Source: Selaginella moellendorffii (lineage: Eukaryota; Plantae; Lycopodiophyta). Taken from it: DNA of 64,000 bases. A model generated the notes under the pieces. It had not been told where the DNA came from, made no database searches, and was given only the letters and a program-made list of their open reading frames with translations. This document shows positions 1,001 to 47,562 of this stretch, piece after piece. Each line of letters opens with the position of its first letter. Positions within the stretch are counted from its first letter, which is position 1. The translations under genes and the position numbers were made by a program. Location of the stretch: NCBI RefSeq assembly GCF_000143415.4, contig NW_003314332.1, positions 868,001-932,000 on the forward strand, written 5' to 3'.

Positions 1001-1210
1001 TTACATCCTGTGTTCCGAGATGGTTAATCCGTAGAAAGCACTGATTCGGTCGCGGTTGTGGGCCATCTGGTTGGGCTGGATCATGGTGTCTGCCTCTATG
1101 AAGGTTCTCATCCCTGCTCTGTGCAGGTCTCTGCATGTCTGGTCCAGGCCGCGATCCTCTGAAGCTCCGAGCGTTTTACCCTTGACAGCAAAGAGTTTGC
1201 TCAGGTTCGT
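1001..1210 (-). mobile_element. Element E1: fragment of 5'-truncated family-A non-LTR retrotransposon
   Basis: Matches family-A ORF2 at about 24924-25125; followed by the target copy at 1211-1225. Confidence 0.85.
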
Positions 1211-1225
1211 CTAGTCCGACTTTGT

Positions 1226-1450
1226 CAATGGGGTTTTAATTAGTTTAGCCTCTATAAACCATAGAGTCCGATTTCGACATGCTCGAAACCGGGAAAGAGC
1301 TCTTCAAGATTTTTAGGTGGGGTGGGACGAGGGGGACAAAGTAGAACTGGTACTCGAGCCCGTGATGTCCGATGTCCAAGCTTCCGAAGTTCCTGGTGTG
1401 GAACTCTGTCGACTCGGGGAGGTACACGTGCCTTCGTTCTTGAACATGTG
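1226..1450 (-). mobile_element. Element E2: 225-bp 5'-truncated family-A LINE (3' tail only)
   Basis: Begins CAATGGGGTTTTAATTAG like the other A copies; flanked by CTAGTCCGACTTTGT (1211) and CTAGTCTGACTTTGT (1451). Confidence 0.92.
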
Positions 1451-1546
1451 CTAGTCTGACTTTGTTAAACGGGGCCTTTTATTTTCCAGTAAAAAACCAA
1501 AAAGACTGGGCATGGTTTCGTTGGGCACAAAACCAGCAAAGAGCCT

Positions 1547-3175
1547 TTATCTAGAGGAGCCTACAATGGAAGTACCAACGGAAAGGGGGGTTGCTCGTGA
1601 ACTGGCGCCCGAAGGTCTTCCGAGATGCGTCACCTGGAACCATTCATCCAGCAGTGTCCACATCCATTCCCGAGTACCTGCCTCCCCTTGCTTCCACAAA
1701 AAATGCCAGATCTGTGCTTCTTTTCTTGCTTTTTCAGGACCATTTCTTCCTCCTCTCTTTTCCAGTTGTAGGACCCGGGCTGCTGCTGCAGTTATCATTC
1801 TAGACCACACCCGTGACGCTACCACCCTTGGTCCTTCTTCCCTGTCGTTAAAGATTCTGTTGCACCGGGCTTTCCATACTTCCCACATTGTAATTCCTCT
1901 CAATAGGTCCATTATCTCTGTTGGAATTCCTTCTGTGTCTATTCGAGTTGTGTTGAGCTGATCAAACCGCGGTGCCCCTTCTTCTATTGCTGCCCATTTC
2001 CAAGAGTCTGTTCCATTTCGCATTCCTGTGGCAGCTTCGCCCCACACTGCCGCTTCATATGTGAGGCACACTTGTCTTTGGGAGTGCTGTTGCGGCATCC
2101 AGCATGTGCTTCTCCACACGTCCTGTGCGCTTTTGCATTCCCATAGTATGTGCCTTTGTGTCTCCCTCGCTCCACATTTGTCACAAGTTTGGTCCAAGAG
2201 GTGTATGTTCCGCTTTGATGGCAGCCAGTCTTGCATTGTCAACCACATGAAGTATCTTGTTTTTGCTGCCCACCATCCTTTCCATAGTTCTTTCAATATC
2301 GCCTGTTGTATCTTGTCCTGTATGTTGGCTCGTTTCATCCTTGATACCAGTAGTGAGTCACTGCGCGGCCGAATGAGCCTTCTCCCCAGTCTTGTTTCGT
2401 AGGCAAAAAATTCTTCCTTTTGCCTTCCCCGCCAATTCCATTCCATCGGATCCCATGCCAGCTTGCTTAATTTTTGTTGCCTGAACCAGTACATCATAGC
2501 TTCCTGGCACTCTGTTACCATTGGGTCCATTGATGCTGTTTTCTTGTCTAACCGTATGACTCGTATCGGCTCTGCTCTTGACATGTCCGGTCGTGAGCTC
2601 TCCTCGGGCACCTTGTATGGTAACAGTCTACCAGCCACCCCAACCTCGAAGACAAAACATTTCGCCTGGTCTTTAGTTGCCGTATATATCACCTTGTCCT
2701 CAGCTATCCACCATGCTGGTGTCGTTTCTCTGGCTTCCCTAATGCTCTGTTTGCAGTTCCCTTGCGCATCTTCCAAGGCTGTTTCAAACTTTTTCAGCCG
2801 GTGTGCCGAGATTTCCAGCCCGTAGAAAGCCTTTAGTCTATCTCTGTTCATTTCTGTGTCCCCCACTTTTATCATCGAGTCAGCTTCTGCAAATGTTCTC
2901 ATCCCAGCACTGTGAAGGTCCCGGCATACTTTGTCTATTCCTCTGTCCTCTATTTCTCCCAAACATTTCCCCTTATATTGAAATAGCTTATTTAGAAATA
3001 TTGGTTGTCGGTCCAACTCGTAGGTGTTTGTTGGTTTTCTTTTTTCCATCTTGCTCTTGAATTCTTTCCACAATCTGAACAGTTTCCCAGAGAAAGTATT
3101 TGGTCTTGGCATTTTCAGCGCACGTGAACAGCCACCTTTCATCTTTTTCCCAGTTTTGCCTCGTGTGTTCTAGTC
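1547..3175 (-). pseudogene. Family-B ORF2 C-terminal part (zf-RVT-type zinc finger)
   Basis: CDKCGARETQRHILWEC and EVWKARCNRIF motifs; apparent frameshift near 3120. Confidence 0.88.
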
Positions 3176-45300: not shown

Positions 45301-45453
45301 CAGATCATGGATTCTTGGGGAGGGATGCTCCCGGCCGGGTGAAAAACGATCTGGAGGTGGAACAATTAATCGAAGTCCATACCTGTGTGCTCCTTGCCTT
45401 GACATCTTTTGCAGTTCTGAGGTCCGGGGGAGGACCACGTTTTGCCGGTTCAT
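42368..45453 (-). pseudogene. Family-A ORF1, copy E8
   Basis: ORFs 44776-45453 and 42368-44761, frameshifted in a G run relative to E6. Confidence 0.85.
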
Positions 45454-46247
45454 GGGTGTTGGGGAGGACGGTCTTTGTGGGTCATTGAGAGCTGTCCCAA
45501 GTGCTGCTGGGTATCAATCCAAGTCCGTCAGACTGTCCGTGTTCGTCCTTTGCTGCTACGCCCGCGAAGTGCCCTTCTAGTGTCCTCGTGTTCTAAGGAC
45601 CAGAACTTGGAGTGATTGGCACTTATTTTGCTTCTCGGGTGCTTCTGTCCCTTTCCAGTGCTTCAGGCGTCCCTTCCTCCGGTCAGGCGTGGCCCCCTTC
45701 TTGCTTTTGCTTTTTTTTTTTTTTTCTTGGGGAAAGGGGGGGGAGCGGGACTTCTGCCACTGATCGGTCCGCTGTTGAGTCCTCTTTTTGATCAACCAGG
45801 AGGGACCAAAGAAGATTGTGGACCGTGAAGCCAGCAATCCTATTGGGACTGGTGATCCTGGAGCGATCTCTTCACTACCCAAATGGATCCGCGTGGACCT
45901 TCTGTTGGGTGGAGCGAGCTTGAACCAGGGGATTCTTGGCGGTGTCAGTCAGCAGCACTGTGGGGGGATTAGAACGATGGGGAAGAGATCGGGATCGTTG
46001 CAAGGGAAGCGCCTGACCGGCGGGGAGCCGTGGAGAACCGGGACCTTTGCACAGCCAGTACCGAGATCGACAAGTGGGTTCCGCACACTCTAGAGTTCGG
46101 CCGTGAACCAAGGCGCCTAGTAGCAGATCCATGGCGAGCAGTTGGGGAGCGAACCAGGAAGCTGTGGGAAGTGGGGGGGATGAGAGCGCCGGAACTTTGA
46201 GGAGCGCCTTGCACCTAGGGTTTCCATCTCCGCTAGTCCGACTTTGT

Positions 46248-46585
46248 CAATGGGGTTTTAATTAGTTTATCCTCTACAAACCATAGAGTCCGATTTCGAC
46301 ATGCTCGAAACCAGGAAAGAGCTCTTCAAGATTTTTAGGGGGGGTGGGACAAGGGGGACAAAGTAGAACTGGTACTCGAGCCCGTGATGTCTGATGTCCA
46401 AGCTTCTGAAGTTCCTGGTGTGGAACTCTGTCGACTCGGGGAGGTACACGTGCCTTCGTTCCTGAACATGTGCTGCCAAATCCATATTGGTGGCTTCCAC
46501 GTCCATTCTTCTTCTCCAGCCTCGCTTCTTCCTCTAAAAAACGGCCACAGCTTCTTCTCCTTCGCTATCTTCCCTTCCTCGCCTA
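46248..46585 (-). mobile_element. Element E9: 338-bp 5'-truncated family-A LINE
   Basis: Family-A 3' tail; next target copy 46586-46600 continues into 25S rRNA. Confidence 0.93.
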
Positions 46586-47562
46586 CTAGTCCGACTTTGT
46601 GAAATGACTTGAGAGGTGTAGAATAAGTGGGAGCTTCGGTGCAAGTGAAATACCACTACTTTCAACGTTATTTTACTTACTCCGTGAGGTGGAGACGGGG
46701 CCTGGCCCCTTCTTCTTGTCCCAAGGCCGGCTCATGCCGGCCGATCCAGGCAGATGACATTGTCAGGTGGGGAGTTTGGCTTTGGCGGCACATCTGTTAA
46801 AAGATAACACAGGTGTCCTAAGATGAGCTCAACGAGAACAGAAATCTCGTGTGGAACAAAAGGGTAAAAGCTCATTTGATTTTGATCTTTAGTACGGATA
46901 CAAACTGCGAAAGCATGGCCTGTCGATCCTTTAGTGTTTCCAAATTTGAAGCTAGAGGTGTCAGAAAAGTTACCACAGGTATAACTGGCTTGTGGCAGCC
47001 AAGCGTTCATAGCGACGTTGCTTTTTGATCCTTCGATGTTGGCTCTTCCTATCAATGTGAAGCAGAATTCACCAAGTGTTGGATTGTTCACCCACCAATA
47101 GGGAACGTGAGCTGGGTTTAGACCGTCATGAGACAGGTTAGTTTTACCCTACTGATGAGCTGTGCCACAATAGTAATTCCACTTAGTACGAGAGGAACTG
47201 TTGATTCGCACAATTGGTAATTGCGCTTGGTTGAAAAGCTAGTGGCGCGAAGCTACCATGCGTGGGATTATGACTGAACGCCTCTAAGTCAGAATCCGTG
47301 CTAGATGTGGTGCTCTCTACCTCCTCAGCTGTTACCTGATTAAGGTTAGGGGGGCCCCGTGCTCCCCCGAGAACACATGATGCAACCGCCATCCCCCGGG
47401 GCCGATGCTGCCCCGGGGGCGCGGCTTGGAAATCCAATTTCGAACGGTCGAGGAGATAAATCCTTTGCAGATGACTTAAATAGGGGATGGGGTACTGTAA
47501 GTGGCAGAGTAGCCTTGCTGCTACGATCTGCTGAGGTTCATCCCTCTGTCCCACTGATTTGT
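46586..47562 (+). rRNA. 25S/26S rRNA 3' portion, degenerate
   Basis: CTAGTCCGACTTTGTGAAATGACTTGAGAGG, GTCAGGTGGGGAGTTTGG and the sarcin-ricin loop AGTACGAGAGGAAC. Many CpG transitions at conserved sites (GATGTTGGCTC, ACCGTCATGAGAC). Confidence 0.97.

Follow-up and report, generated by a model that had tools for sequence, protein, structure and literature searches.

A 64,000-nt stretch of Selaginella moellendorffii DNA (the window; contig NW_003314332.1, 868,001 to 932,000) holds a stack of LINE copies that ends in a 25S rRNA gene, raising the question of whether a plant LINE can insert repeatedly at one nucleotide of the large ribosomal RNA gene, a habit so far described for LINEs only in animals in the literature we could search. 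To test whether the element boundaries share a target, we searched the window for the 25S segment CTAGTCCGACTTTGT, allowing up to 2 mismatches. Twelve matches were found, all on the + strand (0.11 expected by chance; 0 of 100 shuffles reached 12). Each match is followed by one of two or three conserved element 3′ ends (CAATGGGG... or TAAACGGGG...) and preceded by an element 5′ end or an internal truncation point. All element open reading frames lie on the − strand, so the elements are antisense to the rRNA. Self-comparison of the window resolved nine head-to-tail copies, which belong to two autonomous families (A and B) and one noncoding passenger (C), with exact 3′ ends and 5′ truncations ranging from 225 bp to full length (8.4-8.5 kb; Table 1). 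The original prediction of at least nine stacked, antisense, site-specific insertions with a ~15-bp duplication was therefore confirmed, with a small correction: the boundaries thought to carry partial copies of the 15-mer instead carry whole extra 15-mers, all of them at the 5′ junction of a full-length element. The site lies 148-163 nt downstream of the AAGG^TAGC (R2) sequence in a Selaginella 25S fragment, close to the predicted distance of roughly 150 nt.

Table 1. Features of the insertion array and the adjoining rDNA, in window coordinates.
Positions	Strand	Feature	Basis
1004-1205	−	Family A fragment; 5′ truncation point at 1205; 3′ part cut off by the end of a 13.5-kb DNA transposon (1-1003)	98% match to 24924-25125
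1211-1225	+	15-mer target copy (perfect)	15-mer search
1226-1450	−	Family A, 225-bp 5′-truncated copy	Junctions; self-comparison
1451-1465	+	15-mer (1 mismatch)	15-mer search
1466-23515	−	Family B full-length copy (about 8.5 kb, at 1466-3175 plus 16690-23515), interrupted by the DNA transposon at 3176-16689; carries zf-RVT and RVT_1; ORFs broken	Pfam; self-comparison; empty site seen in L003
23516-23554	+	Two perfect 15-mers separated by 9 nt, at the 5′ junction of the full-length B copy	15-mer search; junctions
23555-27041	−	Family A, 3487-bp 5′-truncated copy	Self-comparison
27042-27056	+	15-mer (perfect)	15-mer search
27057-27711	−	Family B, 655-bp 5′-truncated copy	Self-comparison
27712-27726	+	15-mer (1 mismatch)	15-mer search
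27727-36112	−	Family A full-length copy A1 (8386 bp); 5′ UTR about 760 nt, ORF1 about 1030 aa, ORF2 about 1500 aa (APE, RT, zf-RVT); ORFs carry a few stops or frameshifts	ORFs; Pfam
36113-36159	+	Three 15-mer copies with 1-nt spacers at the A1 5′ junction; the two nearest A1 share the same base change	15-mer search; junctions
36160-37813	−	Family C, 1654-bp noncoding passenger	Self-comparison; a contig of the likely RNA run X2 covers its body
37814-37828	+	15-mer (perfect)	15-mer search
37829-46232	−	Family A full-length copy A2 (8404 bp)	Self-comparison; Pfam
46233-46247	+	15-mer (perfect)	15-mer search
46248-46585	−	Family A, 338-bp 5′-truncated copy	Self-comparison
46586-47560	+	25S rRNA gene 3′ part (Rfam LSU model about 2411-3399); begins with the last 15-mer (46586-46600); inferred first-strand nick between 46600 and 46601	15-mer search; Rfam; junctions
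49775-49894	+	5S rRNA gene linked in the spacer; marks the locus as an rDNA unit	Rfam

To ensure that the junctions were not peculiar to this array, we examined further loci in the older public assembly (GCA_000143415.2). Five more loci (L001, L003, L004, L005, and L010) showed the same junctions, and three of these gave the predicted left end, in which 25S sequence ending ...GAGCTTGACT adjoins the 15-mer. L004 is a complete single insertion of a fourth family (D; 70% identical to A) flanked by 25S on both sides, with the 15-mer duplicated. In L005 and L010, the upstream 25S sequence is followed by the 15-mer and an element 3′ end, and L001, L003, and L010 are further stacks. In contrast, both element ends are destroyed at L002, and this locus was uninformative. 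In total, 19 of 22 readable 3′ junctions in ten loci abut the 15-mer. Specificity is strong but not absolute, since three older A-like copies (probably two events) sit at other TTGT^G sites inside an LTR retrotransposon family. These off-target copies, together with an apparent resemblance of the nick site TTTGT^GAAA to the T-rich/purine preference of L1 endonucleases, could suggest ordinary L1 elements with only a weak TTGT/G preference, whose insertions in dead rDNA units are tolerated while others are purged. However, we consider this very unlikely: the same nucleotide is used by 19 junctions of at least five families (including D and a second passenger, E1, in L010) across six loci, with a constant 15-bp duplication, and a 9-kb rDNA unit offers many TTGT^G sites, none of the others being used. 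In addition, the nearest non-Selaginella relatives are dispersed and poly(A) tailed.

We next asked whether the nine copies record separate insertions or the multiplication of one inserted rDNA unit by unequal crossover or segmental duplication. A1 and A2 differ by 4.5%, with a dN/dS of 0.20 in ORF2 and 0.28 in ORF1 (1.2-1.7 in control frames), indicating that they diverged under purifying selection and therefore descend from separately evolving active lineages rather than from in-place duplication. In the window, no two copies share a truncation point, no shared private mutations were seen, and three families are interleaved; moreover, a 15-bp homology is too short to drive recombination. Multiplication of one unit is thus a remote possibility for the window. 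Nevertheless, L001 holds two adjacent A copies with the same truncation point, the same 222-bp deletion, and only 0.2-0.35% terminal divergence, so unequal crossover or an assembly artifact also builds arrays. To order the insertions, we built a maximum likelihood tree from the 3′ 1.3 kb of ten A copies; however, the three long window copies had equal terminal branches, so that no age gradient could be read and the reused 15-mer could not be identified.

Taken together, these data are best explained by families of plant L1-clade LINEs that integrate by target-primed reverse transcription at one fixed position of the 25S rRNA gene, antisense to the rRNA (probability of roughly 0.85). In the inferred cycle, the element is transcribed from its own 5′ UTR, since an antisense element cannot ride on the Pol I transcript, ORF1 and ORF2 are translated, and the proteins recognize a conserved pair of 3′ hairpins on an RNA without a poly(A) tail. 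The APE domain would nick the rRNA-sense strand at ...CGACTTTGT^GAAATG, with the TTTGT-3′OH end priming cDNA synthesis, and the other strand would be cut 15 bp upstream (GACT^CTAGTC), giving the 15-bp duplication. Because the target is duplicated, it would survive each insertion and could be hit again, so a dead rDNA unit would collect a head-to-tail stack. The promoter and the role of the APE in site choice are inferred, the latter from junctions alone. Alternatively, the stack may have arisen in one or a few events by template jumping, in which the reverse transcriptase moves from the 5′ end (or an internal point) of one RNA to the 3′ end of another carrying read-through target sequence. Consistent with this idea, the elements end directly at the target without poly(A), making read-through transcripts carrying the 15-mer plausible, and the extra target copies at full-length 5′ junctions share a base change, which shows that target sequence can travel with the RNA. 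However, every inner spacer is exactly 15 nt, the same as the duplication in the single insertion L004, whereas read-through tails would be expected to vary in length, and stacks at different loci have different partners and orders. We therefore regard template jumping as unlikely.

To place the elements among known LINEs, we searched their proteins against Pfam and built an RT phylogeny. Exo_endo_phos, RVT_1, and zf-RVT were found in A and B above Pfam cutoffs (Exo_endo_phos, 2e-16, and RVT_1, 5e-27, in A), the ExoIII motifs QE, GDFN, and SDH are present, and one B copy has an uninterrupted 1542-aa ORF2 with the APE, RT, and zf-RVT domains. However, no fully intact full-length copy lies in the window, so current activity is unproven. 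The best solved relative of ORF2 is human L1 ORF2p (2e-38). A sequence search with the APE against solved structures retrieved only bacterial ExoIII-type enzymes and not the L1, R1, or TRAS endonucleases. The long ORF1 had no Pfam hit even at an E value of 1, and an AlphaFold2 model built on a five-row alignment had a mean pLDDT of 30 and was discarded. In an IQ-TREE analysis of 50 RT sequences, Selaginella A and B grouped with poly(A)-tailed plant-type relatives (support 100/99) and then with Trifolium and Linum L1 elements (99/96), and not with the only fish sequence in the data set. Although this tree is unrooted and contains neither curated clade references nor a true Tx1 sequence, it places the lineage among plant L1 elements, while the original prediction had named an L1/Tx1 type. 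Like these plant L1 elements, A and B carry zf-RVT; the poly(A)-tailed relatives, whose ORF1 has DUF4283 plus a zinc knuckle, are, however, dispersed.

Other retroelements are already known to target the large-subunit rRNA gene. The R1 elements of arthropods (R1Bm and R1Dm) are also APE-type, two-ORF LINEs without poly(A) that insert at one 28S site with a short fixed duplication (about 14 bp); however, R1 belongs to another clade, lacks zf-RVT, inserts in the sense orientation, and is cotranscribed with rRNA, and the Selaginella site lies 74 nt downstream of the ATCTAGCGAAACC stretch that probably marks the R1 site. R2 elements likewise use target-primed reverse transcription but have a single ORF with a C-terminal restriction-like endonuclease and sit in the sense orientation, and their similarity to the Selaginella ORF2 (1e-15) is much weaker than that of human L1 ORF2p. 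Tx1-group LINEs (Tx1L, Keno, Mutsu, and others) are animal APE-type relatives of L1 that group with the vertebrate L1 F lineage and have sequence-specific targets, including multicopy RNA genes (PMC4640811, PMC3747384), and we know of no 28S-targeting member. In the same genus, PLE-X Penelope-like elements, a different class without an endonuclease, insert at a precise 28S position and were reported in 2021 as the first plant transposable elements to do so (PMC8557442). We found no published description of a plant APE-type rDNA-specific LINE in the literature searched, which did not extend to Repbase; one review table lists “R2” in rice and maize, citing a 2004 screen (PMC10946416), but we regard this as doubtful. 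A plant L1 lineage with this habit, antisense and therefore with its own promoter, would show convergent evolution of the rDNA “safe harbor” strategy inside a clade known for dispersed insertion, and offers a natural example of how an L1-type endonuclease can be narrowed to one site. The 15-mer and its flanks appear to be conserved in land-plant 25S, judging from Arabidopsis, making the enzyme a candidate for plant-native targeted insertion, an aim now pursued with animal R2 (bioRxiv 10.1101/2025.08.22.671877). More speculatively, and with less than even odds, plant L1 elements may have evolved rDNA specificity independently, as a fourth origin beside the restriction-like-endonuclease, R1, and Tx1 groups, in a lineage that may still be active. 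On this tentative view, only the target copy that keeps the native downstream 25S sequence (TTTGT^G) may be recut, so that stacks would grow in one direction, and PLE-X elements may exploit the nick made by this APE.

Finally, we compared the element termini. All families end in ...CCCCATTG, ...CCCGGTTG, or ...CCCCGTTTA directly at the target, with no poly(A) tail. The 3′ hairpins are conserved in A, C, and D with two compensatory pairs, and a homologous hairpin occurs in B and E1. This tailless module fits the proposal by Ohshima that ancestral plant L1s recognized their RNA stringently (PMC3747384). In family C, only the last 77 nt, comprising the 3′ hairpin module, and the 5′ GAAACCCTA motif match family A. 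GAAACCCTA occurs only three times in the 64 kb, each time 9-23 nt from a full-length 5′ end.

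To determine whether the elements are consistently joined to ribosomal DNA, we first searched the window for the 25S 15-mer CTAGTCCGACTTTGT, allowing up to 2 mismatches. The 15-mer occurred 12 times, against 0.11 expected, and all occurrences were on the + strand where the original prediction had placed element boundaries. A search with Rfam models identified the 3' third of a eukaryotic LSU rRNA beginning at the last 15-mer, as well as a 5S gene. In contrast, all long ORFs between 1.5 and 45.5 kb were on the - strand. Each 15-mer was followed by a conserved element 3' end (CAATGGGG... 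or TAAACGGGG...) and preceded by a 5' end or an internal break point. Comparison of the window with itself resolved nine copies, the last of which is followed by the 25S 3' part. These copies belong to two autonomous LINE families, A and B (about 66% identical at the DNA level), and a non-coding passenger, C, which shares only its last 77 nt with A. The copy of B that is full length is split by a DNA transposon with 22-bp terminal inverted repeats (GCTCTATTTCGTTAAAGTGGGA), a TAGTC duplication, a DUF7869 ORF on the - strand, and a NIF-type phosphatase ORF on the + strand. The empty site of this insertion was observed in another locus (L003, see below), and the transposon has also inserted, at another position, into the leftmost A fragment.

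Features of the window and of other Selaginella loci (L numbers), with the nine LINE copies in order along the window
Location	Strand	Feature	Size
1004-1205		A fragment	
		A copy	225 bp
1466-23515		B copy, full length, split by DNA transposon	
		A copy	3487 bp
		B copy	655 bp
		A copy A1, full length	8386 bp
		C copy	1654 bp
		A copy A2, full length	8404 bp
		A copy	338 bp
3176-16689 and 1-1003; L002:1-9584; L011:15337-20912		DNA transposon	13.5 kb
36161		3' end of C matched by a low-depth contig of run X2	
42368-42375		Overlap of ORF1 stop and ORF2 start, family A	
46586-47560	+	LSU rRNA 3' third (Rfam model about 2411-3399), starting at the last 15-mer	
49775-49894		5S rRNA gene	
47682-48533		Short repeats in spacer	period about 240 bp
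50299-50595		Short repeats in spacer	period about 48 bp
50734-58280		LTR retrotransposon in rDNA spacer	
50734-51880 and 56860-57993		LTRs of this retrotransposon (96.4% identical)	
59575-60052 and 63516-64000		Repeat	480 bp
L003:16449-16500		A copy broken off against telomere repeats	
L010:15402-16758		Decayed rDNA unit	

Family A encodes Exo_endo_phos, RVT_1, and zf-RVT domains, and family B encodes RVT_1 and zf-RVT in the window; all three domains occur in an uninterrupted 1542-aa ORF2 at locus L005. The APE retains the ExoIII-type motifs QE, GDFN, and SDH. ORF1 is about 1030 aa, with a long proline/serine/lysine-rich N-terminal part and a C-terminal part that matches no Pfam family. The ORF1 stop of family A overlaps the ORF2 start (ATGACTGA), a layout suggesting termination-reinitiation. 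Both full-length A copies carry a few stops or frameshifts. The ORF2 piece was 97% identical to a Selaginella moellendorffii gene model, whereas the next relatives outside Selaginella were only about 31% identical.

To test whether the same junctions occur elsewhere in the genome, we retrieved nine Selaginella loci of assembly GCA_000143415.2 through gene models. The cleanest case, L004, is a decayed 25S gene carrying one copy of a fourth family (D, about 70% identical to A), in which ...TTGAGCTTGACT is followed by the 15-mer, the element, the 15-mer again, and then GAAATGACTTGAG. In L005 (a B copy) and L010 (a stack of four), 25S upstream sequence ending in GAGCTTGACT lies directly against the 15-mer, confirming the left junction with 25S sequence that the original prediction had singled out for confirmation. 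L010 also holds a second passenger (E1, 2.06 kb) with a B-type 3' end, and L001 and L003 are further stacks. Counting only readable 3' ends, 19 junctions in six loci abut the 15-mer. Three older A-like copies (88 to 91% identical), in L009, L011, and L012, do not, and all three are hosted by the same LTR retrotransposon family as that found in the rDNA spacer of the window. Two of them lie at the same site in an LTR (...CCCTTTGT^GTTAGTC); one of these has a 16-bp duplication, and they group together in a tree, so they are probably one event copied with the LTR element. The third lies in the internal part of the same LTR family (...GTGTTGT^GAACA), with a duplication of at least 44 bp. Nevertheless, all nick sites share TTGT^G, and the preference for the 15-mer is strong but not exclusive.

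With regard to INDEPENDENCE, we compared A1 and A2, which differ at 4.45% of sites (76% of these differences are transitions, and 44% lie at CpG). Their dN/dS is 0.20 in ORF2 and 0.28 in ORF1, against 1.2 to 1.7 in the other frames. Therefore, most of their divergence arose while both lineages were coding and mobile; they are separate insertions, and ORF1 is a real gene. Consistent with separate insertions, no two window copies share a truncation point. In contrast, two neighbors in L001 share the same truncation and a 222-bp deletion and are nearly identical, so duplication (or an assembly artifact) also contributes elsewhere.

We next examined the ends of the elements for conserved RNA modules. 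The last 80 nt or so of A, C, and D fold into two hairpins, with two compensatory pair changes in the 10-bp first stem, and B and E1 retain a homologous first hairpin. There is no poly(A). The motif GAAACCCTA occurs only three times in the window, each time on the - strand and 9 to 23 nt from the 5' ends of A1, C, and A2, and family D has AAAACCCTAG at the same place. Full-length 5' junctions also carry extra target material: two whole copies before A1 that share a base change, one whole copy plus 9 nt before B, and GACTAG before C and D. This fits transcripts that start in the upstream flank and carry target sequence along; however, abortive cut-and-fill events are not excluded.

The 3' junctions place the first nick on the rRNA-sense strand after TTTGT, and the duplication places the second nick 15 bp upstream on the other strand. 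Because the element is antisense to the rRNA, we infer that it must use its own promoter. Inside a stack, the base after each 15-mer is C or T, whereas all four kinds of real target have G. We therefore suspect that only the 15-mer next to the native downstream 25S is cut again, although this is an inference from few sites.

In assembled contigs from sequencing runs, one run presumed to be RNA (X2) contained a 1553-nt contig at depth 128 over the body of C and nothing over the adjacent A 3' end, suggesting that C is transcribed. A low-depth contig of X2 matched the 3' end of C and then continued into 8 unrelated nt and a run of A rather than into the 15-mer; it may represent a C-like copy or a polyadenylated transcript from another site. 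Another run showed a C/15-mer/B junction that is absent from the window, so stacks differ between loci.

To classify the elements, we compared ORF2 with solved structures and built an RT tree of 50 sequences. Human L1 ORF2p was the best solved relative (2e-38), far ahead of R2 (1e-15). In the tree, A and B are sisters. Their next relatives are two poly(A)-tailed elements with different flanks and a DUF4283-plus-knuckle ORF1, followed by Trifolium and Linum L1s (99/96). Published trees place Tx1 with the vertebrate F lineage and make land-plant L1s monophyletic (PMC3747384). The lineage is therefore best called plant L1, with the caveat that our tree contained no curated references. Target-specific LINEs have been listed in the early-branching, Tx1, and R1 groups (PMC4640811), and the endonuclease-less PLE-X elements of two Selaginella species have been called the first TEs known to target 28S in plants (Craig et al. 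2021, PMC8557442). We found no description of the LINEs reported here in a literature search that did not extend to Repbase.

No 18S gene follows within 16 kb of the 25S end in the window (47561 to 64000), where the spacer holds short repeats and a 480-bp repeat is also found; the unit looks like a dead or terminal rDNA copy. In L010, a decayed rDNA unit has 25S upstream sequence (model 1640 to 2388) fused to a strongly deleted 18S remnant and followed by spacer and 5S sequence, 1.1 Mb into a 2.45-Mb scaffold. In L003, an A copy is broken off against a head-to-head block of plant telomere repeats, (TTTAGGG)3 followed by (AAACCCT)3, inside a 0.98-Mb scaffold.
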